From Anaeramoeba ignava BMAN (taxonomy: Eukaryota; Protista; Anaeramoebae): a stretch of DNA of 64,000 nucleotides. The translations under genes and the position numbers were made by a program. The stretch lies in contig JAPDFW010000059.1 in the NCBI GenBank assembly GCA_028826165.1, positions 1,674,001 to 1,738,000 on the forward strand. Reading direction: 5' to 3'. The notes under the pieces are model-generated. The model worked only from the letters and a program-made list of their open reading frames with translations. It searched no databases and was not told the DNA's origin. Numbering within the stretch: position 1 is the stretch's first letter; each line of letters opens with the position of its first letter. Shown piece by piece: positions 271 to 64,000 of this stretch.

Positions 271-3200
271 ATGAATAATCAAAATGAAAATATTATTGGT
301 CAACAAATTCAACAAAAAGATTCTTCTTATTCTCTTATGTATGCTATGATTCTTGGAATTAGAGTTTCTGTAACTCCAATTATTTAATGAATTAATTAAT
401 GTTCTTTTTGTTTTTTTTTATCAAGTTTATTTGCGAATGTTTTTATTAAAATAATTTAAATTTTTTTAATTTCCCCTTCTTTTTATTTCTTTTAGCTTTC
501 TTCATTTTATTCAGAAAATAATTATTTTCAAATACAAAATTTGAAAGAAGAAAATTTTTTAAAAATAGTTAAATTTTGGATGCCAAAGTAATCAAAATTA
601 AAATTAAAATCAAAATTAAAATCAAATTCAAAATCAAAATCAAATTCAATATCAAAATCAAAATTAAAATCAAATTTAAATTTCAAATTCAAAAATCAAA
701 ATCAAATCAAAATTCAAAGAAAATCAAAAATCAAAATCAAAATTCAAAATTTGAAAAAGAAAAATTTCAAAAAAAAATTAAATTAAAATCAAAATCAAAA
801 TCAAAATCAAAATCAAAATTAAAATCAAAATCAAAATCAAAATCAAAATCAAAATCAAAATCAAAATCAAAATCAAAATCAAAATCAAAATCAAAATTCA
901 AAATCAAATTTAAAATCAAAATCAAAATCAAAATCAAAATTAAAATTCAAAATCAAAATCAAAATCAAATTAAATTCAAAATCAAAATCAAAATCAAAAT
1001 CAAAATCAAAATCAAAATCAAAATCAAAATCAAAATCAAAATTAAAATCAAAATTCAAATTCAAAATCAAAATCAAATTCAAAATCAAATTCAAAATTCA
1101 AAATTAAAATCAAAATCAAAATCAAAATCAAAATCAAAATCTAAAATCAAAATCAAAATCAAAATCAAAAATCAAATTTAAAATTCAAAAATCAAAAATC
1201 AAAATCAAAAAATTAAAATTAAAATTAAAAATCAAAATCAAAATCAAAATCAAAAATCAAAATCAAAATCAAAATTAAAATTCAAATCAAAATTAAAATC
1301 AAAATTAAAATCAAAATCAAATTTAAAATCAAAATCAAAATCAAATTGAAAATCAAATTCAAAATCAAAATCAAAATCAAAATCAAAATCAAAATCAAAA
1401 TCAAAATCAAAAATCAAAATCAAAATTCAAAATCAAAATCAAAATCAAAATCAAAATCAAAATCAAAATCAAAATCAAATTCAAATTCAAAATCAAAATC
1501 AAAAATCAAAATGAAATCAAAAATCAAAATCAAAAATTAAATGAAAAATTAAATGAAAAATTAAATGAAAAATTTTTTAAAAAAAAAAAGTCAAGGAGGA
1601 GACAAAACACCTCCACACGATTGCTCAAATTTTAATTTTAATGATTATTCACCTGCAGTATTCTCAAATCTAAGATTATTCTCTGGATATCACCCAATCG
1701 ATTATTTAGTATATAAAAAACAAATTTTTTAATTGTTTTACTTTTTTGGAATTAATTTTATGATTATATTTTTAACTAGATGTCTTTAACAGAAAATTAT
1801 TCCATGAGTAGAATTGGAACTCCAGGAAAAAGTGGAAGTCTTTTTTATTTTTCTCGTGATGGAAAATTTATTTTGAAAACAATAACAACATCTGAAATGA
1901 AATTTTTAAGAGCAATTCTTAAATCATATTATGAATATATATCGAAAGAACCTGATACACTTTTAAATAAATTCTTGGGGATTCATCAAATCAAAATTTC
2001 TCATAAAAGAAAGTTTAATGTTGTTGTATTAGAGAATATTATCCCAATTGGTTGGGAAATTACAGAAAAATATGATCTCAAAGTTTGATTTATTTTCCAA
2101 AAAAAAAAGTTTTTTGATTCATTTAAAAAAAAAAATCAATCATTATTTTTCAATGATAAATAAAAAAGGGATCAACAGTGGGAAGACAAACTAATGAAGA
2201 AAAGAAAAAAAAGAAAGGAGTTACATTGAAGGATCTTGATTTTCAAAGATCAATTTCATTTGGACCTCAAAAAGCAACTCGATTTTTATCTCAAATTGAA
2301 AAAGATGTGAAAGTAATTTTTTTATTTTTTGAAATTAAATGAAATCAAATTAAATTAAAGTTAATTTCTTTTGGGAATTTGGAAAAAATTTTAGTTTTTG
2401 AGTCAATTATCTATTATGGATTATTCTCTCTTGTTTATTGTTTCAAAAACAACACAAAACCAAAATATTGAAGAAGAAAAAAAGGAATTAGATAAAGATT
2501 ATAAATCGGAAGAAAAGAAAAAATTGGAAGAAAAAAAGAAATTAGAAGAAAAAGAAATTAGAATATAAACCAGATGAAAAGAAAAAAGATAAAGATTATA
2601 AATCAGATAAAAAATATAAATCAGAAGAAAAGAAGAAATTGGAAGAAAAGAAGAAATTAGAAGAAAAAAAGAAATTAGAATATGATGAAAAGAAAAAAGA
2701 TAAAGATTATAAATCAGATAAAAAATATAAATCAGAAGAAAAAAAGAAATTAGAAGAAAAAAAGAAATTAGAAGAAAAAAAGAAATTAGAAGAAAAAAAG
2801 AAATTAGAAGAAAAAAAGGAATTGGAAGAAAAAAAGAAATCAGATAAAAAAAAGGAATTGGAATATGATGAAAAGAAACCAGAAAAATATAAATCAGATA
2901 AAAAATATAAATCAGAAGAAAAGAAGAAATTGGAAGAAAAGAATAAATCAGAAGAAAAGAAGAAATCAGAATATGATGAAAAGAAATCAGATAAAAAATA
3001 TAAATCAGATAAAAAATATAAATCAGAAGAAAAGAAGAAATTGGAAGAAAAAAAGGAATTAGATAAAAAAAAGGAATTGGAAGAAAAGAAGAAATTGAAG
3101 AAGAAAAAAAGAAATCAGATAAAAAGAATGAAATGATGAAAAGAAAACCAGAAAAAGAAATCAGAAAAAATATAAATCAGAAGAAAAGAAGAAATTGGAA

Positions 3201-3912
3201 TATGATGAAAAAAAAAAAATTAGAATATGATGAAAAGAAATTAGATAAAAAATATAAATTAGATAAAAAATATAAATCAGAAGAAAAGAAGAAATTGGAA
3301 GAAAAAAAGGAATTGGATAAAAAAAAGGAATTAGAAGAAAAGAAGAAATCAGAATATGATGAAAAGAAAAAATTAGAAGAAAAGAATAAATCAGAAGAAA
3401 AGAAGAAATTAGAAGAAAAAAAGAAATTGGAATATGATGAAAAGAAAAAAGATAAAGATTATAAATATGATGAAAAGAAAAAAGATAAAGATTATAAATA
3501 TGATGAAAAGAAAAAAGATAAAGACTATAAATCAGAAGAAAAGAAAAAGAAATTAGAATTGGAAGAAGAAAAAAAGAAAAAGGAAAAATTACAAAAATTC
3601 GAAAACCAAAAATCCGTAAAAGAAAGCCAACTTTTTATTTCAAAAATACCCTTTTTCAAATCAGAAAATGGAGGAATTTTAGCAACAGATGAAAAAGATT
3701 CACCAATCGATGAACAATATTTTATTGGAATAATAGATTTCCTTCAAAAATACACAACCAAAAAAAAATTGGCTCATCAATTTAAATCTTTGAAATATGA
3801 TAAAAATAAAATATCCACAGTTAATCCCCAAAAATACGCAGTTCGCTTTATAAAATTTATCACACAAATAACAGGAACAAAAACAGAATCAACAAACAAA
3901 TCAAAAAAATAG
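271..3912 (+). CDS. Phosphatidylinositol phosphate kinase (PIP5K family), multi-exon, with a K/E-rich repetitive insert
   Basis: Exons give MNNQNE...YAMILGIRVS, KTPPHD...FNDYSPAVFSNLR, GTPGKSGSLFYFSRDGKFILKT, KYDLK|GSTVGR, LKDLDF, IMDYSLL and YFIGIIDFLQKY...ISTVNPQKYAVRF, all PIPK catalytic motifs. GT-AG introns (e.g. 588-1590). Frameshifts occur inside the repetitive insert. Confidence 0.9.
588..1590 (+). repeat. Intronic (AAAATC)n microsatellite
   Basis: Degenerate AAAATC/AAAATT hexamer array between GT at 588 and AG at 1589-1590. Confidence 0.9.
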
Positions 3913-4105
3913 AAGAAATTTTAAATTTTAAAAATTAAATAATTTTTATTTGAAAAATTAAATAAAATCCAAAACAAAATCTTTTTTTAAAAAAAAAAAG
4001 TAATTATGATTAAATTGTTCAATGATTTAGGAAAAAGAAATGATCCAAAAAAAAAGTTGAACAAAAAGGAAAAAGAGAAAAGGAAGAAGAAGAATAAGAA
4101 ATGGA

Positions 4106-5659
4106 TTATTTGTTGGTTTCTTTTTGGGGATTGAGATTATCAAGAAGAGAATCGGATTTTTTCTGAAGATTTTGAACTTTCTTTTTATTTTCAACAATTT
4201 TCCTACTAAGAACAGCAGGACCACGAAGACAACCACCTTTGCAAGCCATAACCTCAAGAAGATTATAAGGTGTTTTATGGTGAGCAAATTTCTCGAGACA
4301 CTCAGCAGTTTTATCTGAAAAACCATCGATTTTATGTATATTAACTTTAGCTTTGTTGCCGATTATTGAAGCAACAGCAGCTGAAACGCCACCAGTATAA
4401 GGATAGCCACGACCCTCTTTATGGGCGTTGCCAAAGAGAAGGTTTGTGTCTGGTTTTACTTTAATAGGATCGATGCCCTTTGCAAGGAAAAGACAAGCGA
4501 GTTCTTCGAAGGTGATTGCGTAGTCGACAATAGGGTCTTCGATAGATTCCTGTTTTTTTGAGAAACACGGACCGATAAAAACGCATATGGCGTTGGGAAT
4601 ATTGTTCTTGACAAGCTCTGCAGTATAATGCATTGGGGTTGGTGTTTGAGAGACGAATCCCTTGACGGTAGGAATGTGTTTATGAACAAGTTCAAGATAT
4701 GAAAAACAGCACGACGTTGTCATAACGGTATTTGGATCTGCGTTGATTCTTTCCAAAAACTCCTTTGCCTCGTGCTGGGTTGTAACGTCTGCACCATGAG
4801 CGACCTCAACGACTTGGCTGAAGCCGAGCATTTTGATAGCAGCAACGATCTGAAAGAGATCTGATTTCCCGAATTGTCCGACAATAGAAGGCGCCAGCAT
4901 TGCCACAACCTGTCTGGAGCGTCGTGTGTCCTTAATGAATTTGCAGACGTCGATAACCTGTGATTTATGCGCAATTGCGCCGAACAAACACGAATCAACG
5001 CATGCGCCGCAGGATATGCACTTGTTGAAATCGAGGACCTGAAAACCAGTTTTTGGATTGCGAGTAATTGCCTGGACAGGGCAGGACTCCTCGCAGGGTA
5101 TTGGGATACGTATGATAGAATGATACGGGCAGGAACGCATGCAGTTGCCGCACTTGATGCACTTTCCTGGATCGATTTTCGCTTTCGCATTAGGCAGTAT
5201 ACTAATCGCATCTTTTGGACAGGAATTTACACACGGTTTCGCAAAGCATCCTGCACACGCATCTGTTACGATGTATTGTGATTGGACACAATGCTCACAT
5301 GCGATGTCCATGATCGTTAGAATTGGTCGCGTTATTTTGGTCCTATTTAATGCTCTTTGTGCATATACTGATAATGGTGTCCAATCCATATCAATTTCAT
5401 CCGCTCCAAATCCTAATCCTGCCATGATTCTTTGCTTCAATACTGCCCGTTCTTTGTACTGGCAACACCGTATTGGAACTCGATCTTTCGGTAAAAGTTT
5501 TACTGGTAAAGAATCTACTAATTCCACTAATTTGTCCTGAAATGTTAATTTCGCTATCTCAATTAATACCATTCGTACATATCTAACTGCTTCGTTTCCA
5601 ACTCTTTGTTTTTGTGTAAAGTTTTCTTGCCAATCTAATTTTCTTGATACATAACTCAT
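4106..5659 (-). CDS. Monomeric [FeFe]-hydrogenase with N-terminal ferredoxin-type clusters (group B-like), intronless
   Basis: RCCQYKER/ACEHC N-terminal Cys motif. Ferredoxin motifs CAGCFAKPCVNSCP, CIKCGNCMRSCP, CISCGACVDSC. H-cluster motifs TSCCFSY, GPCFSKKQE, EVMACKGGCLRGP. Confidence 0.9.
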   Translation of the reverse strand: MSYVSRKLDWQENFTQKQRVGNEAVRYVRMVLIEIAKLTFQDKLVELVDSLPVKLLPKDRVPIRCCQYKERAVLKQRIMAGLGFGADEIDMDWTPLSVYAQRALNRTKITRPILTIMDIACEHCVQSQYIVTDACAGCFAKPCVNSCPKDAISILPNAKAKIDPGKCIKCGNCMRSCPYHSIIRIPIPCEESCPVQAITRNPKTGFQVLDFNKCISCGACVDSCLFGAIAHKSQVIDVCKFIKDTRRSRQVVAMLAPSIVGQFGKSDLFQIVAAIKMLGFSQVVEVAHGADVTTQHEAKEFLERINADPNTVMTTSCCFSYLELVHKHIPTVKGFVSQTPTPMHYTAELVKNNIPNAICVFIGPCFSKKQESIEDPIVDYAITFEELACLFLAKGIDPIKVKPDTNLLFGNAHKEGRGYPYTGGVSAAVASIIGNKAKVNIHKIDGFSDKTAECLEKFAHHKTPYNLLEVMACKGGCLRGPAVLSRKIVENKKKVQNLQKKSDSLLDNLNPQKETNK

Positions 5660-5989
5660 TTTTCTTTTCTTATTTTATTTTTTTTTTTATTTTATTTTGA
5701 GGAAAGAAATGATTTTTTTATTTTTTATTATTTTTTTTTTTCATCTTTTTTTCTTTTCTCTTCCACGTGTTTAATTATTTGGGTTCTTTTTCCAAAGTCC
5801 CCTTTTTTTTTTCTTTTTATAAAAATTATTTTTAATCCAAAAACTAAACAAAATCAAATTAAATCCAAATCAAAAACAAGATCAAAATTAAATCCAAATC
5901 CAAAAACAAAATTGAAACAAGATCAAAAACAAAAACAAAAACAAGATCAAAATCAAATCCAAAAACAAAATCAAATCAAATTATTTAAA

Positions 5990-7190
5990 TCAAATTATTT
6001 AAATTAAATTATTTAAATTAAATTATTTAAATTAAATCAAAATATTTAAATTAAATTATTTAAATTAAATTATTTGAATCAAATTAAATTATTTGAATCA
6101 AATCAAATTATTTAAATCAAATTAAATTATTTAAATTAAATTATTTAAATCAAATTATTTAAATTAAATTAAATCAAATTATTTAAATCAAATTAAATTA
6201 TTTAAATCAAATTATTTAAATTAAATCAAATCAAATTATTTAAATTAAATCAAATTATTTAAATTAAATTAAATCAAATTATTTAAATCAAATTAAATTA
6301 TTTAAATCAAATTATTTAAATTAAATCAAATCAAATTATTTAAATTAAATCAAATTATTTAAATTAAATTAAATTATTTAAATTAAATCAAATTATTTAA
6401 ATCAAATTAAATCAAATTATTTAAACCAAAAATATTTAAATTAAATTATTTAAATTAAATTAAATTATTTAAATTAAATTAAATTATTTAAATCATTTTA
6501 TTTAAATCAAATTATTTAAACTCAAATTATTTAAATTAAATCAAATTATTTAAATTAAATCAAATTATTTAAATTAAATCAAATTATTTAAATTAAATTA
6601 TTTAAATTATTTAAATTAAATCAAATTATTTAAATCAAAAATTAAATTAAATCAAAAATTATTTAAATTAAATCAAATTATTTAAATTAAATCAAATTAT
6701 TTAAATTAAATCAAATTATTTAAATTATTTAAATTAAATCAAATTATTTAAATTAAATCAAATTATTTAAATTAAATCAAATTATTTTAAATTAAATCAA
6801 ATTATTTAAATTAAATCAAATTATTTAAATTAAAATTAATTAAATCAAATTATTTTAAATCAAATTATTTAAATTAAATTAATTAAATCAAATTATTTAA
6901 ATTATTTAAATCAAATTAAATCAAATTATTTAAATCAAATTAAATTATTTAAATTAAATCAAATCAAATCAAATTATTTAAATCAAATTAAATTAAATTA
7001 TTTAAATTAAATCAAATTATTTAAATTAAATCAAATTATTTAAATTAAATTAAATTAAATCAATTTAAATTAAATTAAATTATTTAAACCAAAATATTTA
7101 AATCAAATCAAATCATTTAAATTAAATCAAATCCAAAAACAAAATTGAAACAAATTATTTAAATCAAATCAAATCAAATTATTTAAATCA
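5990..7190. repeat. Intergenic AT-rich satellite (AAATT/AAATC/ATTTAAAT mosaic)
   Basis: About 1.2 kb of degenerate tandem repeat between divergent genes. Confidence 0.85.
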
Positions 7191-7318
7191 ATTTTATTCC
7201 ACTTTTTTGATTTGATTTTTAAATGGTTGAATGAAATAAATATTTTGAAAAAGAAAAAGAATTTTTTTTTCATTTTTCATTTTTCATTTTTCATTTTTTT
7301 TCTTTTTCTTTCTTCAAA

Positions 7319-9567
7319 ATGTCAGTTTATTTGATAATTTTGTTTTCAATTCTCAGTATAACATTAGCAGATCCAACACCACCAACCTGGCCAGAAAAGG
7401 TAAAAATAATTAAAATAATAAAAATTAAAATAAAAATAATTAAATTAAAAAAATAAAAAAAGTATCACGTTGAGTTTGTATTTTCACTTCCGTATGCAAA
7501 TTTACATGAAACAACAACAGTGGATTACGACAACACAACAATTCAAGAAAGAATACTTTTTTACAACGGATTAGCAAGTGAATTTCTTCTTGAAACAGAC
7601 ACTTACGATATCATTGTTACTCAAACAAATCAAACCTGTTTCAAAAACATGGAACCTCATGCTACAAATATCACTCTTATTCCAATGTTTCCTGACTTAA
7701 CTCAATGGACTTATATCGGTCAAAATGTTGTTCGTGGATTTTTGTGTGATTCTTGGCAATGGATTTATACTCCTGATGGGTTTAATAAAACTAATGTTTA
7801 TAATTTCTATGTTGATACTTCTTCAGGTCAACCTATTCAATATCATATGCTTGGTTATGATGTGGTTTTTGGTTCTCATTTCGATGAATATGTGTAATTA
7901 ATTCAATTCAAAATTAAAATTCATTTATAAAATTAAAATTAAAATTAATTAAAATTCATTTATAAAATCAATTAAAATTAAAATTTAAAATTAAAATTAA
8001 AATTAAAATTAAAATTAAAATTAAAATTAAAATTAAAATTAAAATTAAAATTAAAATTAAAATTAAAATTAAAATTAAAATTAAAATTAAAATTAAAATT
8101 AAAATTAAAAATTGTTAGTCTTGATTATTATACCTATATCCCAAATTATGTAGATCCAAATGCCTTTACTTTACCTTCAATTTGTGATCATCCTCATAAT
8201 AATATTCGTAAATAACTTAAATTTTCAATTTTCTTTTTTTAATTTTCTTCTTCATTTTGATTTATTTATTATTTATTTATTATTTATTATTTAGCTCATC
8301 AATTTGGAAGAAATTCAAGACTTTTAAAAAAACTTTTCCCAACAATACCTTCTAAACCAGATTCTCTTTTTGAATCCTTTATGAAGAAATATTCCAAAAA
8401 TTATGAATCTGTGGATGAATTTACAAAAAGAAAAGCTATTTTTTACGAAAATTATCAATATATTGAAGATTTTAATCAGAAAAATTCACACATGCAATGT
8501 AAATAGAAAAAGATATTAAATAAATATTAAATAAATAATAAAAATTAAATATTAAATAAATATTAAATAAAAATTAAATAAATATTAAATAAAAATATTG
8601 ATTTGATTATTCCTTTTTTTTTTGTTAGTGGCTATAAATCATTTTGCTGATATGACTCTTGATGAATTCCGCAAATATATGTTGATTCCAAAAGAAATCG
8701 CAGCAAAACAAAAAGAATTCCCAATGGAAACTTACCAACCCCAAATGAAATTTTCAGATCTTCCAACAGAATTTAGTTGGCTTGATTACGGCGCAGTTTC
8801 TCCAGTTAAAGACCAAGCTGTTTGTGGATCTTGTTGGGCATTTAGTACTGTAGGTGCTATTGAAGGTCAATATTTCCTTGCAACAGGCGAACTCAAATTA
8901 TTTAGTGAACAAAATGTAATTGATTGTTCATGGAATGCTACTCATCCTTCATATGGTTGTGATGGAAGTATTCAAGCTTTTGCTTATGAAGCTATTAAAG
9001 GAATGGGTGGAATTGAATTGGAATCTGATTATCCTTATTTAGGAATTACTGGGTATTTTTCATTTTAAAAAATTCAAAATTAATATTAAATTTATAATCA
9101 AAATATTTTTTTAGTTATTGTGGTTTTTCTCAAGAAAAAAGAGCTGCTGCAATTCAATCTTATTATAACATTACAAATTCTGAAGAAGCTGTTAAAGAAG
9201 CACTTTATAATATGGGTCCACTTGCAAGTAAACTTTCTTTGTTTTTTCTTCTAAATAATTATAAATATAAATTTATTGATTCAAATTTTTTCATCATTTA
9301 GTTTCTTATGATGCTGGTCATTTAAGTATGGTTTATTATTCAAGTGGAGTTTATAGTGATAAAAATTGTTCTTCAACTAATCTTGATCATTCAGTTCTTT
9401 TAGTTGGTTGGGGAGATTATCCTGGAACTGGAGAACCTTATTGGTTAATTAAAAATTCTTGGAGTACTCATTGGGGTGATAATGGATATTTCTACATCTC
9501 AAGAAAAAACAATATGTGTGGAGTTACAACTCAAGCTTCTTTCCCAGTTCTTCAAAGAATTCACTAA
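7319..9567 (+). CDS. Papain-family (C1A) cysteine protease with signal peptide, N-terminal extension (26/29-kDa proteinase/CfaD-like) and I29 prodomain; multi-exon
   Basis: Signal peptide MSVYLIILFSILSITLA, NHFADMT prodomain, QAVCGSCWAFS (catalytic Cys), LDHSVLLVGWG (His), YWLIKNSWSTHWG (Asn). Confidence 0.9.
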
Positions 9568-60437: not shown

Positions 60438-63243
60438 TTAAATTTGTTTTTTATTTTTATTAAAAGTTTCCCAAAAATGAGGATTTGTTTTTAAATCAAG
60501 ATTAAATAAATAAGGATCTGGTATTGAAAAATTTGTTAATTGATCTTTTTTTTTAAATGAAACATCTAATTTTTCAATAGGAATTTTTGGTGGATTTCTC
60601 ACTATAAATTTTTCTTCTAAAGCATTTGTAAATTCATTAATAAGATGTCTTTTCATTTGTTGAGGATTACTTTTAGAAATAATTTTTGATTTTTCATTTT
60701 CATTTTCATTTTCATTTTCATTTTCATTTTCATTTTCATTTTCATTTTCATTTTGATTTTCATTTTGATTTTTAATTTGATTTTTGATTTTTATTTTGAT
60801 TTTCAATTTGATTTTTATTTTGATTTTGATTTTGATTTTGATTTTGATTTTGATTTTGATTTTGATTTTTATTTTGAATTTGATTTTGATTTTGAATTTG
60901 ATTTTGAATTTGATTTTGATTTTGAATTTGATTTTGATTTTGAATTTGATTTTCTTTGTGATTTTTAATTTGATTTTTAATTTTAATTTCATTTTTAATT
61001 TGATTTTCATTTTTAATTTCATTTTCATTTTCATTTTGATTTTGATTTTTAATTTTAATTTCATTTTTAATTTCATTTTTAATTTCATTTTTAATTTGAT
61101 TTTTAATTTTAATTTCATTTTTAATTTGATTTTTAATTTCATTTTTTTAATTTCATTTTCATTTTTAATTTCATTTTGATTTTCATTTTGATTTTTAATT
61201 TCATTTTTAATTTGATTTTCATTTTTAATTTCATTTTCAATTTCTTTATGATTTTCTTTATGATTTTCTTTTTTAATTTCATTTTCTTTGTGATTTAATT
61301 TTGATTTTGATTTTAATTCAGATTCAGATTTTGATTTCTGAAATTTACTTTTCTTTCCCATTTCATGAAGTTTTTCTTCAATTCCAATTAAAAAAAATTG
61401 TTGTTTTCCAATAATAGATCCAGGTCTACATAATCTCATATATCCAATAGCTTCACGAGCTGTAAAATGATAATTTTTCATTAAGAAAATCGCATTAAGA
61501 GTTCCTGTTCTTCCTAAACCAGCTTTACAATTATGAACGACAGTATGATCTTTTAATAAAAATCTTTTTTCATTTCCATCAAGTTCAAATCCATAAAAAA
61601 ATTGTTTCTTTTTTGTATCAGTTATCTGTATTTTATGCAGTTGATGAACCACAAAATTTCCTTTGGAATTCATTTTCAAAATGCCTTTTTCTGAAGCCAA
61701 ATCATTATCTACTAAAACTGATTTATAACCTGAATGAGATTTTTTCCATTCTTCACATTTTTTCATATAATTTTCAACAGTAATATTTATTGAATCTCCA
61801 AACTCTATTGCATATCCTTTGCGATAATAATTTGCCATTATCAAAAAAGAATGACAGAAAATGCTTTTTATTTTTTCCAATTCATATTTTTTGATGTGGA
61901 AATTTTTCAGCTGCGGATCTGATCCAATATATTCATTTCGAGAATTAAATAACGTTTGATTGGCCCAACATGCTCGAATTAAATATTTAGGATAAAATGG
62001 AGTTGATTTCTTAATTCGTATTTTTCTTTTTTGTTGATTATGATGCAAATCATAATATATAAAAGTGAAATACATTTTTTTTCCTTTTTTCTCTAGATCT
62101 ATAAATCGATGAGGTTTTTTGTTGAATAAAAGACACAAAATATGTTTTTTGCTGACAAAATAATCCTTTTGATTTTTTCTTGATATTTTATATAATTTGC
62201 CAAATCCTTTTATTGTGTGGCTGACTAATTTTGGCAAATAATCCACACCTAATACTTGTTCATTTTGTTTGATATCTTGAATTTTTTTGGTTGTGAAATT
62301 TGACATGAGAATTTTTGTATTTGCAGCAAAGCAATGCACAGCAACACCACCTTTTTTTTCTGTTGAATTTCCATTATTATTTTTGATATCATTTTTATCC
62401 TTTTTCTTCTTATTATCGTTATCAATGATAACGTTATTTTTTGGTAAATTTGAATTATTTTCTTCATCACACAAATTGCTTTGATCATCTATATTAATTT
62501 CTTTCTCAACAATATTAAGAAAATGGTTGATAATTTTCCAAGAAGGAACACCACCATCTTCATAATACAAGTGATGGTGAGAAATGTTGTTTTGAATGAA
62601 TATTTGAGAATCATACAAAGGCAAATTGAGTCTGATAATTGATGTGATCCCTATTTTTTGGAAATGTTCAACATATTTATCCAGACTCCAAAAATAATAT
62701 TTCATCAAATTTTCTGCAATCATCATTTTTTCTGGGCTTAATGGTCTTGAGAAACGTGATGGCAAAGTATTTCTTTGAACAAATTTTTTCTTTGATTCTT
62801 TTTTCTTTTTCTTTTTCTTTTTCTGATCAGTTGAAGGAGTTATTTTTTCATTTTCTGGTTTATATTCATTTGAAAAATCTCTTGGAGAAGAAAATGCAAG
62901 AAGTTTTCCAGGGATAATCCAATTCATATCCCCATTTTCTATTTTATCATGATATACAAACTCTTCAATTGAAAAAGTTTCGAAATTATAAAATCCACAT
63001 TTCATTGCTTTATATAAACCATTTAAAACATCTAAAACTGTTAATGAAAATGTTTGACGTAAATATGAAGCGTCTCTAAAGCTAATTATTTTATCTATTT
63101 TTTCGAAAGGTTTAAAAGCTTCTTCTGGTGTTTTTTCCATTGCAATCATCATAAATGAACAAATTAAAACAGCTGAGTTTGTAAAACTTTCTGGAGTATC
63201 AAGACAATAAAAGATGATTTTTTTTTGAGTTAATTCTGGATCC
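60438..63243 (-). CDS. CDC14: Cdc14-family dual-specificity phosphatase (5' exons lie beyond the window), containing an intein
   Basis: FRDAS, LDVLNGLYKA, ENGDMNWIIPGKLLAFSSP, IIRLN..LYD, HHLYYEDGGVP, GVAVH|CKAGLGRTG, AREAIGYMRLCRPGSIIGKQQ. Confidence 0.92.
61530..62333 (-). mobile_element. Intein (268 aa) with no recognisable LAGLIDADG endonuclease, in the Cdc14 active-site loop
   Basis: Block A CFAANTKILMSN, block B FVSKKHIL, block F FYGFELDGNEKRFLL, block G TVVHN followed by Cys+1; excision restores AVHCKAGLGRTG. Confidence 0.95.
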
Positions 63244-64000
63244 TAAAAATTTATTTATAAAATTAAATTAAAATTTATAAAATTAAATTAAAATTTATAA
63301 AATTAATATAAAATTTATTTATAAAATTAAAATTCATTTATAAAATTAAATTAAAATTTATTTATAAAATTAAATTAAAATTTATTTATATTAAATTAAA
63401 ATTTATTTATAAAATTAAATTAAATTCATTTATAAAATTTATATTAAAATTTATTTATAAAATTAAATTAAATTCATTTATAAAATTAAATTAAAATTTA
63501 TTTATAAAATTAAATTAAAATTTATTTATAAAATTAAATTAAATTCATTTATTAAATTAAAATTAAAATTTATTTATAAAATTATATTAAATTTTATTTA
63601 TAATATTATATTAAAATTTATTTATAAAAATTAATATTAAATTTATTTATAAAATTTTAATTTAAATTCATTTATAAAATTTATATTAAATTAAAATTTA
63701 TTTATAAAATTAAATTAAAATTTATTTATAAATAAAATTTAAATTCATTTATAAAATTTATATTAAAATTTATTTATAAAATGTCATGTAAAAATTATAT
63801 TTTTGTTTTACATTCATTTATAAAATTAAATTCATTTATAAAATTAAAATTTATTTATAAAATTAAATTCATTTATAAAATTAAAATTTATTTATAAAAT
63901 TAAAATAAAAATTTATTTATAAAATTAAATTCATTTATAAAATTAAATTCATTTATTAAATTAAAATTTATTTATAAAATTGAATTAAAATTTATTTATA
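63244..64000 (-). repeat. AT-rich low-complexity intron of CDC14 (runs off the window)
   Basis: TTTATAAAATTAAATTAAAATTTA-like array; minus-strand TAG acceptor at about 63243-63245. Confidence 0.7.

Follow-up and report, generated by a model that had tools for sequence, protein, structure and literature searches.

Here, we propose that a Cdc14 phosphatase gene of the protist Anaeramoeba ignava BMAN is interrupted by a class-1 mini-intein that is competent to splice and belongs to the PI-SceI/Prp8 (Hom_end_hint) family, and that this intein entered the gene lineage in a single insertion, has been inherited vertically since, and rides there as a passenger. We put the probability of this reading as a whole at roughly 0.88. 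The gene lies at the end of a 64,000-nucleotide (nt) stretch of contig JAPDFW010000059.1 (assembly GCA_028826165.1, positions 1,674,001 to 1,738,000 of the forward strand), hereafter called the window and numbered from its first letter. The insertion point is exactly between the His and the Cys of the HCX5R phosphate-binding loop of Cdc14.

The intein occupies positions 61530-62333 of the window on the minus strand, where it translates into 268 residues without a stop, starting with CFAANTKILMSN (Cys-Phe-Ala) and terminating in HTVVHN. A preliminary description of this DNA had placed it at exactly these positions and left the strand unstated; read on the plus strand, the same interval contains many stops. 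The enclosing open reading frame (ORF) is 904 residues long (60438-63152, minus strand) and flanks the intein with ...KKGGVAVH upstream and CKAGLGRTG downstream. No stop codon falls in the intein frame, as against 14-21 in each of the five other frames, and mononucleotide shuffles of the 804 nt carry 25 stops on average and were stop-free in 0 of 20,000 cases. With the guanine plus cytosine (G+C) content of the window at 20%, these counts argue that the open frame did not arise by chance.

By its domain order, signature and general-acid motif, the host gene is predicted to encode a Cdc14 dual-specificity phosphatase. Within the ORF, Pfam places DSPn (PF14671) and DSPc (PF00782, residues 534-580) on either side of Hom_end_hint (PF05203, residues 274-383), and the succession of DSPn and DSPc is also detected in the GenBank product KAJ5077292.1. 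The best homologues of the host protein, which come from A. flamelloides, fishes and protists, carry CDC14 annotation, and its motif YYEDGGVP aligns with the general-acid motif [FY]xDGxxP of the orthologues. The HCX5R(S/T) signature is divided into ...VAVH and CKAGLGRTG, which become contiguous only once the intein is excised. Precise excision would yield AVHCKAGLGRTG, as seen uninterrupted in every orthologue examined.

The identification of the insert draws on a family profile, on the splicing residues and on a structural model. Searched by itself, the intein matches PF05203 at 64.4 bits (E=2e-17), and the whole ORF gives 49 bits, both above the curated Pfam cut-off of 32.1 bits for Hom_end_hint; the profile reaches 73.4 and 59.3 bits, over profile positions 1-228 of 228, on the inteins of two paralogs introduced below; the match to the NCBIfam profile intein_Nterm is sub-threshold (13.2 bits). 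Invariant in an alignment of six inteins are Cys1, His64 of block B, Gly248, Phe249 and Leu251 of block F (the block-F motif GF.L being present in the Cdc14 intein), His267 and Asn268, and the C-terminal junction reads ...TVVHN/C in all three Cdc14 copies (here and below, a slash marks the junction). The profile match, Cys1 with a block-B His, the terminal His-Asn followed by a +1 Cys, the insertion at a conserved site and the modelled fold are all in place for a predicted intein of class-1 type. The preliminary description had proposed an intein splitting HCX5R between its His and its catalytic Cys, to be checked with Hint or intein profiles, and on both counts the family match and the full set of splicing residues agree with it.

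Among structures in the PDB, sequence comparison retrieves the Cryptococcus Prp8 inteins (best, E=6e-4) and PI-SceI. An AlphaFold2 model of the intein, built from the six-intein alignment, has a predicted local distance difference test score (pLDDT) of about 80-88 in the splicing core (residues 1-60 and 240-268). Foldseek returned 19 matches to this model at E <= 1e-3, headed by 1gpp (PI-SceI domain I, 3.6e-8) and the Prp8 intein 6mwy (9e-8); the matches listed continue with more PI-SceI entries, then other inteins and the intein-like Hint domains of the BIL, Hedgehog and Vint types. The model points to a Hint (horseshoe beta) fold. No endonuclease (LAGLIDADG, PF14528, PF05204 or other) was found at E <= 5 in Pfam searches of the three inteins and of the middle segment alone. 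The Cdc14 intein is therefore a mini-intein, and its counterpart in PI-SceI is "domain I", which comprises the Hint and DNA-recognition parts. An endonuclease remnant in the middle segment was also considered and was rejected, the Pfam search of that segment being empty.

The presence of an intein in this gene is already known. Over the intein, the window protein is 100% identical to GenBank KAJ5077292.1 (UniRef A0A9Q0REL5), which bears the product name [quoted passage not shown]; the depositors' annotation had therefore already recognised it, as the preliminary description suspected might be so. The deposited record is the same gene in a three-exon model and differs only in that a 3' low-complexity repeat is removed as an intron; in the raw ORF this repeat is part of the open frame. 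In A. ignava, Gallot-Lavallee et al. (2023; PMC10710043) counted 103 inteins, with 18 novel host protein groups (KOGs) among their hosts; they demonstrated splicing experimentally for three other Anaeramoeba inteins, and also described paralogous-site inteins and frequent endonuclease loss; the main text of that paper makes no mention of Cdc14 or of a phosphatase. Our search of the 42.8-Mb assembly with the Cdc14 intein gave 37 matches, consistent with the intein-rich genome of which the preliminary description had spoken. A full-text literature search for a natural intein in Cdc14 or in a PTP-type phosphatase found no paper discussing one, the two terms meeting only in incidental co-mentions. 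Elements of this kind are well characterised, and A. ignava is already well known for its inteins. What the present analysis adds is context: the His/Cys insertion point, the occurrence of co-diverged, endonuclease-free inteins in three of four paralogs, and an empty paralog in the same genome. The Cdc14 set is a convenient natural system in which to ask whether active-site inteins of eukaryotes are passengers or conditional regulators.

Two of the matches in the assembly are full length, at 48% and 42% identity; they come from contigs C71 and C102, each within a Cdc14-like ORF and at exactly the same site, ...VAVH/C...VVHN/CKAGLGRTG. When the N-extein and the C-extein were searched separately against the assembly, contig C116 was found to carry a fourth Cdc14 paralog, whose two halves directly adjoin (...IIAVHCKAGLGRTG) with no intein between them. 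Three of the four A. ignava paralogs thus carry allelic inteins (42-48% identical) and the C116 copy is empty. An uninterrupted A[VI]HCKAGLGRTG is present in C116 and in 10 other Cdc14s, three of them from A. flamelloides; these are the empty alleles that an alignment of orthologues, as the preliminary description suggested, was expected to bring out. Among the matches listed (about 120 Cdc14 homologues), PF05203 occurs only in the A. ignava protein. Searches of the public protein collections returned the product of the gene described here (contig C1) and not the C71 and C102 proteins, whose public gene models may be absent or may differ, or which may be contained in the 50% cluster of KAJ5077292.1.

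As judged from these sequences, the simplest reading of this distribution would be a single insertion into the ancestor of the intein-bearing clade, within the A. ignava lineage. In a maximum-likelihood tree of the full precursors, computed on 420 extein columns (the intein columns were dropped as gappy), the three paralogs with an intein cluster together (support 100/99), to the exclusion of C116 and of the A. flamelloides clade. Amino-acid identity among these three copies is 53-59% in the exteins (tree columns) and 42-48% in the inteins. Synonymous divergence (dS) is 0.9-1.3 in the conserved cores of the exteins and 1.2-1.4 in the inteins, both saturated, and its similarity in the two accords with a single old insertion and later gene duplications; recent homing from paralog to paralog would lower the dS of the intein below that of the extein, which is not observed. 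In base composition, too, the intein matches its host (26-28% G+C in the inteins, 28-31% in the conserved cores of the exteins).

Selection has acted on both partners. The ratio of nonsynonymous to synonymous divergence (dN/dS) is 0.29-0.42 for the inteins across paralogs and 0.14-0.34 for the extein conserved cores of all four paralogs, and the catalytic motifs of the hosts, namely the general-acid [FY]xDGxxP and the loop Cys and Arg, are intact. The hosts and the splicing residues have therefore been under selection through a divergence of dS about 1, and this constraint on both is the chief reason, an indirect one, for supposing that splicing still takes place.

It is unlikely, in our estimation, that the inteins were not inherited vertically and that each paralog gained its own after the duplications, by homing from one copy to another. 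Transfer of inteins between paralogs has been described for the MCM, Msh and DNA polymerase families of A. ignava (PMC10710043), and the target DNA is alike in all four Cdc14 paralogs. Nevertheless, the intein-bearing copies are monophyletic at 100/99, their inteins show synonymous divergence as high as that of the exteins, an endonuclease is found in none of the three, and the similar site of C116 is still empty.

Given a single vertical insertion of a splicing-competent intein, how would the phosphatase be made? The mechanism of class-1 splicing and the nucleophilic role of the HCX5R cysteine are established. The intein would be translated within the Cdc14 precursor, whereupon Cys1 would attack the carbonyl of His(-1), the +1 Cys would take over the N-extein by trans-thioesterification, Asn268 would cyclise, and an S-to-N shift would make the His-Cys peptide bond. 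Ligation would restore the HCKAGLGRTG phosphate-binding loop, in which the +1 Cys would next act as the nucleophile of the phosphatase. That splicing occurs, and that its chemical steps follow in this order, we infer. Two consequences can be drawn safely. From the class-1 mechanism together with the role of the cysteine in HCX5R, the +1 Cys should serve first as the nucleophile of trans-esterification and later as that of catalysis. The precursor, in turn, should be inactive, because with 268 residues inserted between the His and the Cys it cannot form the phosphate-binding loop. The preliminary description had argued for both, a single Cys shared by splicing and catalysis and an enzyme inactive until spliced, and its reasoning from established mechanisms was sound.

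As for the history of the element, the homing endonuclease would have been lost from the Cdc14 intein, or would never have been present in it. The intein would have entered once into the ancestor of the three A. ignava paralogs and been passed on through two gene duplications, and it would persist because any deletion that failed to remove it precisely would wreck the catalytic loop and with it the enzyme. The label of selfish passenger suits it better than that of demonstrated regulator. The stronger claim made earlier, that a regulator of mitotic exit depends on protein splicing, is not supported: it is weakened by the existence of the uninterrupted C116 paralog in the same genome, and weak also in that it assumes a yeast-like Cdc14 role for this protist. 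The role of Cdc14 in mitotic exit is established mainly in budding yeast.

Four comparison systems put the Cdc14 intein in perspective. The Anaeramoeba inteins of PMC10710043 share with it the organism and the pool of VMA/Prp8-like inteins. PI-SceI, the VMA1 intein of Saccharomyces cerevisiae (1gpp, 1dfa, 1vde), is the best structural match and has in common with it the Hom_end_hint family, Cys1, the terminal His-Asn, the +1 Cys and a similar block A (CFA..T..LM); it differs in possessing a LAGLIDADG domain II, in homing and in its host, the Cdc14 intein amounting to the domain-I-like part only, in 268 residues. The Cryptococcus Prp8 mini-inteins (6mwy, 6mx6) are eukaryotic, nuclear and endonuclease-less like the Cdc14 intein, and their Cys1-based chemistry is sensitive to oxidation and metals (PMC6805012); however, they are shorter (about 170 against 268 residues), have the spliceosomal Prp8 as host, and are 12-13% identical to the Cdc14 intein in structural alignments. 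Finally, DnaBi1 of Mycobacterium smegmatis is a mini-intein in which, as in Cdc14, the +1 nucleophile is a functional residue of a phosphate-binding loop of the host, and oxidation brings its splicing to a reversible halt (PMC6195587). It is, though, a bacterial class 3 intein, its +1 Ser coordinates Mg2+ and is no covalent nucleophile, and the loop is a Walker-A P-loop and not a CX5R loop of PTP type.

These precedents bear on the idea that the intein has been co-opted as a redox- or metal-sensitive switch, in which oxidation of Cys1, Cys+1 or Cys67 would stall splicing and the Cdc14 paralogs would be active only when reduced. The idea is a refinement of the passenger interpretation, not an alternative to it, and we consider it improbable; slightly more doubtful still is its fullest form, in which conditional splicing would hold three paralogs as inactive precursors under oxidation or metal binding, with the intein-free paralog constitutive. 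The nucleophiles at the two splice junctions are both Cys, the intein has survived two duplications, and all three paralogs share Cys67 of block B, which is the sole observation specific to this locus and suggestive at most. Elsewhere, the Cryptococcus Prp8 intein, the closest solved relative, is reversibly inhibited through oxidation of Cys1 (PMC6805012), and DnaBi1, whose +1 Ser belongs to the P-loop of its host, is an oxidative-stress sensor (PMC6195587). Paired cysteines are not peculiar to this locus, however, and every Cys1/Cys+1 intein would qualify equally; retention is explained just as well by the lethality of an imprecise deletion in an active site (an argument made in PMC10710043); and a Cdc14 paralog without an intein is present. 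The redox-sensitive switch envisaged in the preliminary description is still speculation, with its precedents in other systems (PMC6195587, PMC6805012) and, Cys67 apart, nothing specific to the locus. If true, it would mean an oxygen-gated, post-translational division of labour among cell-cycle phosphatases in an anaerobe.

Several observations weigh against our proposal of a functional, vertically inherited passenger. The block-B motif TxxH has Ser61 in place of the usual Thr, so that the earlier statement that blocks A, B, F and G are intact holds for the key residues, which are invariant, and not for this position. The mean pLDDT of the AlphaFold2 model is 63, a middle insert of about 150 residues being poorly modelled. 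Support is weak (71/51) for where C116 falls with respect to the intein-bearing clade, and the comparisons of dN/dS and of age are only rough because dS is saturated. In addition, the published Anaeramoeba proteomics concern A. flamelloides and not A. ignava (PMC10710043).

The substituted Thr and the weakly modelled middle region, along with the lack of a homing endonuclease, would also suit an intein that has decayed and lost the ability to splice, in which case the three paralogs would be dead Cdc14-like proteins or pseudogenes with a permanent 268-residue insert. This we hold to be very unlikely. Although the three copies have diverged to 42-48% identity, every residue essential for splicing is the same in all of them; the general-acid Asp, the Cys and the Arg of the hosts are intact along with the reading frames, and dN/dS is well below 1; a dead enzyme would not retain both its splicing and its catalytic residues.

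That the 804 nt are instead a spliceosomal intron, open in frame by chance and removed from the RNA, has next to no probability: the predicted intron 2 of the same gene is likewise open in frame, and for that reason an open frame by itself is weak evidence, but none of the five 804-nt deletion windows that give the precise excision product (shifts of -2 to +2; 0/5) has GT-AG, GC-AG or AT-AC ends, all in-frame GT/GC...AG pairs within 30 nt of the borders destroy the HCX5R motif, and the 804 nt are non-repetitive, match an intein profile, are conserved at the protein level among paralogs and are retained in the coding sequence (CDS) of the GenBank model. The borders read CAT/TGC and AAT/TGT. On this sequence logic and conservation we would take the segment to be translated with its host and not to be an intron.

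Turning to the wider relatives of the Cdc14 intein, the nearest within the genome include an intein at Prp8 site a and many that interrupt Walker-A P-loops (at GHVDSGK/.../ST, GPNGSGK/.../SN and further sites). Hom_end_hint inteins stand between the Walker-A Lys and the Ser/Thr in GHVDSGK/../ST (twice), GAGK/../SL, GTRSGK/../ST and GPNGSGK/../SN, on A. ignava contigs C1, C104, C102, C126 and C82; the two in GHVDSGK/ST are also about 270 residues long. They match the "P-loop homing" cluster of PMC10710043. A specific descent of the Cdc14 intein from P-loop inteins was considered and set aside: the bit scores are about equal (55-85) against P-loop, Prp8 site-a and other inteins, and the similarity is mostly limited to blocks A-B and F-G. 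As this modest similarity is equal for all the relatives within the genome, we claim no specific P-loop ancestry. Outside the genome, the relatives are Hom_end_hint inteins of the RNA polymerase subunit Rpb1, DnaB, AAA ATPases, helicases and a Rhizophagus SRP, which fit the large VMA/Prp8-like intein group of PMC10710043.

The gene model in Table 1 was obtained by mapping the 759-residue product KAJ5077292.1 onto the window.

Table 1. Coordinates of the predicted Cdc14 gene and of its intein (window positions; mapping refers to KAJ5077292.1).
Feature	Position	Strand	Basis or remark
Intein CDS, putative Hom_end_hint mini-intein of PI-SceI/Prp8 type, 268 aa	61530..62333	minus	Translation, Pfam, Foldseek
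Cys1 codon, block A, predicted N-terminal splicing nucleophile	62331..62333	minus	Invariant Cys1 in alignment
Block-B His64 codon, within S61-K-K-H64	62142..62144	minus	Invariant; aligns with His of the HIL motif of the Prp8 intein
His267-Asn268 codons, block G, predicted C-terminal splice junction	61530..61535	minus	Invariant His267 and Asn268
+1 Cys codon, first C-extein residue and Cys of HCX5R (CKAGLGR)	61527..61529	minus	Uninterrupted HCKAGLGRTG in 11 homologues
Exon 2, N-extein part: end of DSPn, start of catalytic domain including YYEDGGVP, ...GGVAVH	62334..63242	minus	Pfam DSPn; mapping of KAJ5077292.1
Exon 2, C-extein part: CKAGLGRTG... and remainder of DSPc domain	61349..61529	minus	Pfam DSPc; mapping
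Exon 2, whole (both extein parts and intein)	61349-63242	minus	Mapping of KAJ5077292.1
Intron 2 of the GenBank model, GT...AG, low-complexity K/N/E-coding repeat, open in the gene frame	60617-61348	minus	Mapping
Exon 3	60441-60616	minus	Mapping; stop codon 60438-60440
Intron 1, GT...AG, AT-rich minisatellite, runs past the window end	63243-64498 (window part 63243-64000)	minus	Mapping
Exon 1, 69 aa, outside the window	64499-64705 (extended coordinates)	minus	Mapping

The raw ORF has 904 residues against the 759 deposited because the repeat of intron 2 stays open in frame. This intron of the GenBank model is a microsatellite-like repeat coding for K, N and E, with no stop codon in the frame of the gene, and it may be either spliced out or translated. 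Similar N/Q/E-rich runs occur within the ORFs of the sister Cdc14 paralogs. Nearly the whole of intron 1 (about 1.26 kb) is an AT-rich minisatellite, its units resembling 'aaatttatttataaaattaaattaaa'. About 1-6 kb past the end of the window (extended-sequence positions 1967-7958, minus strand), the upstream neighbours are two ORFs broken by long N/Q/E-rich repeats; judged by eye from their motifs, the long one resembles a BEACH-domain protein and the other a WD40-repeat protein, and the repeats in both look typical of the low-complexity insertions of the A. ignava genome.

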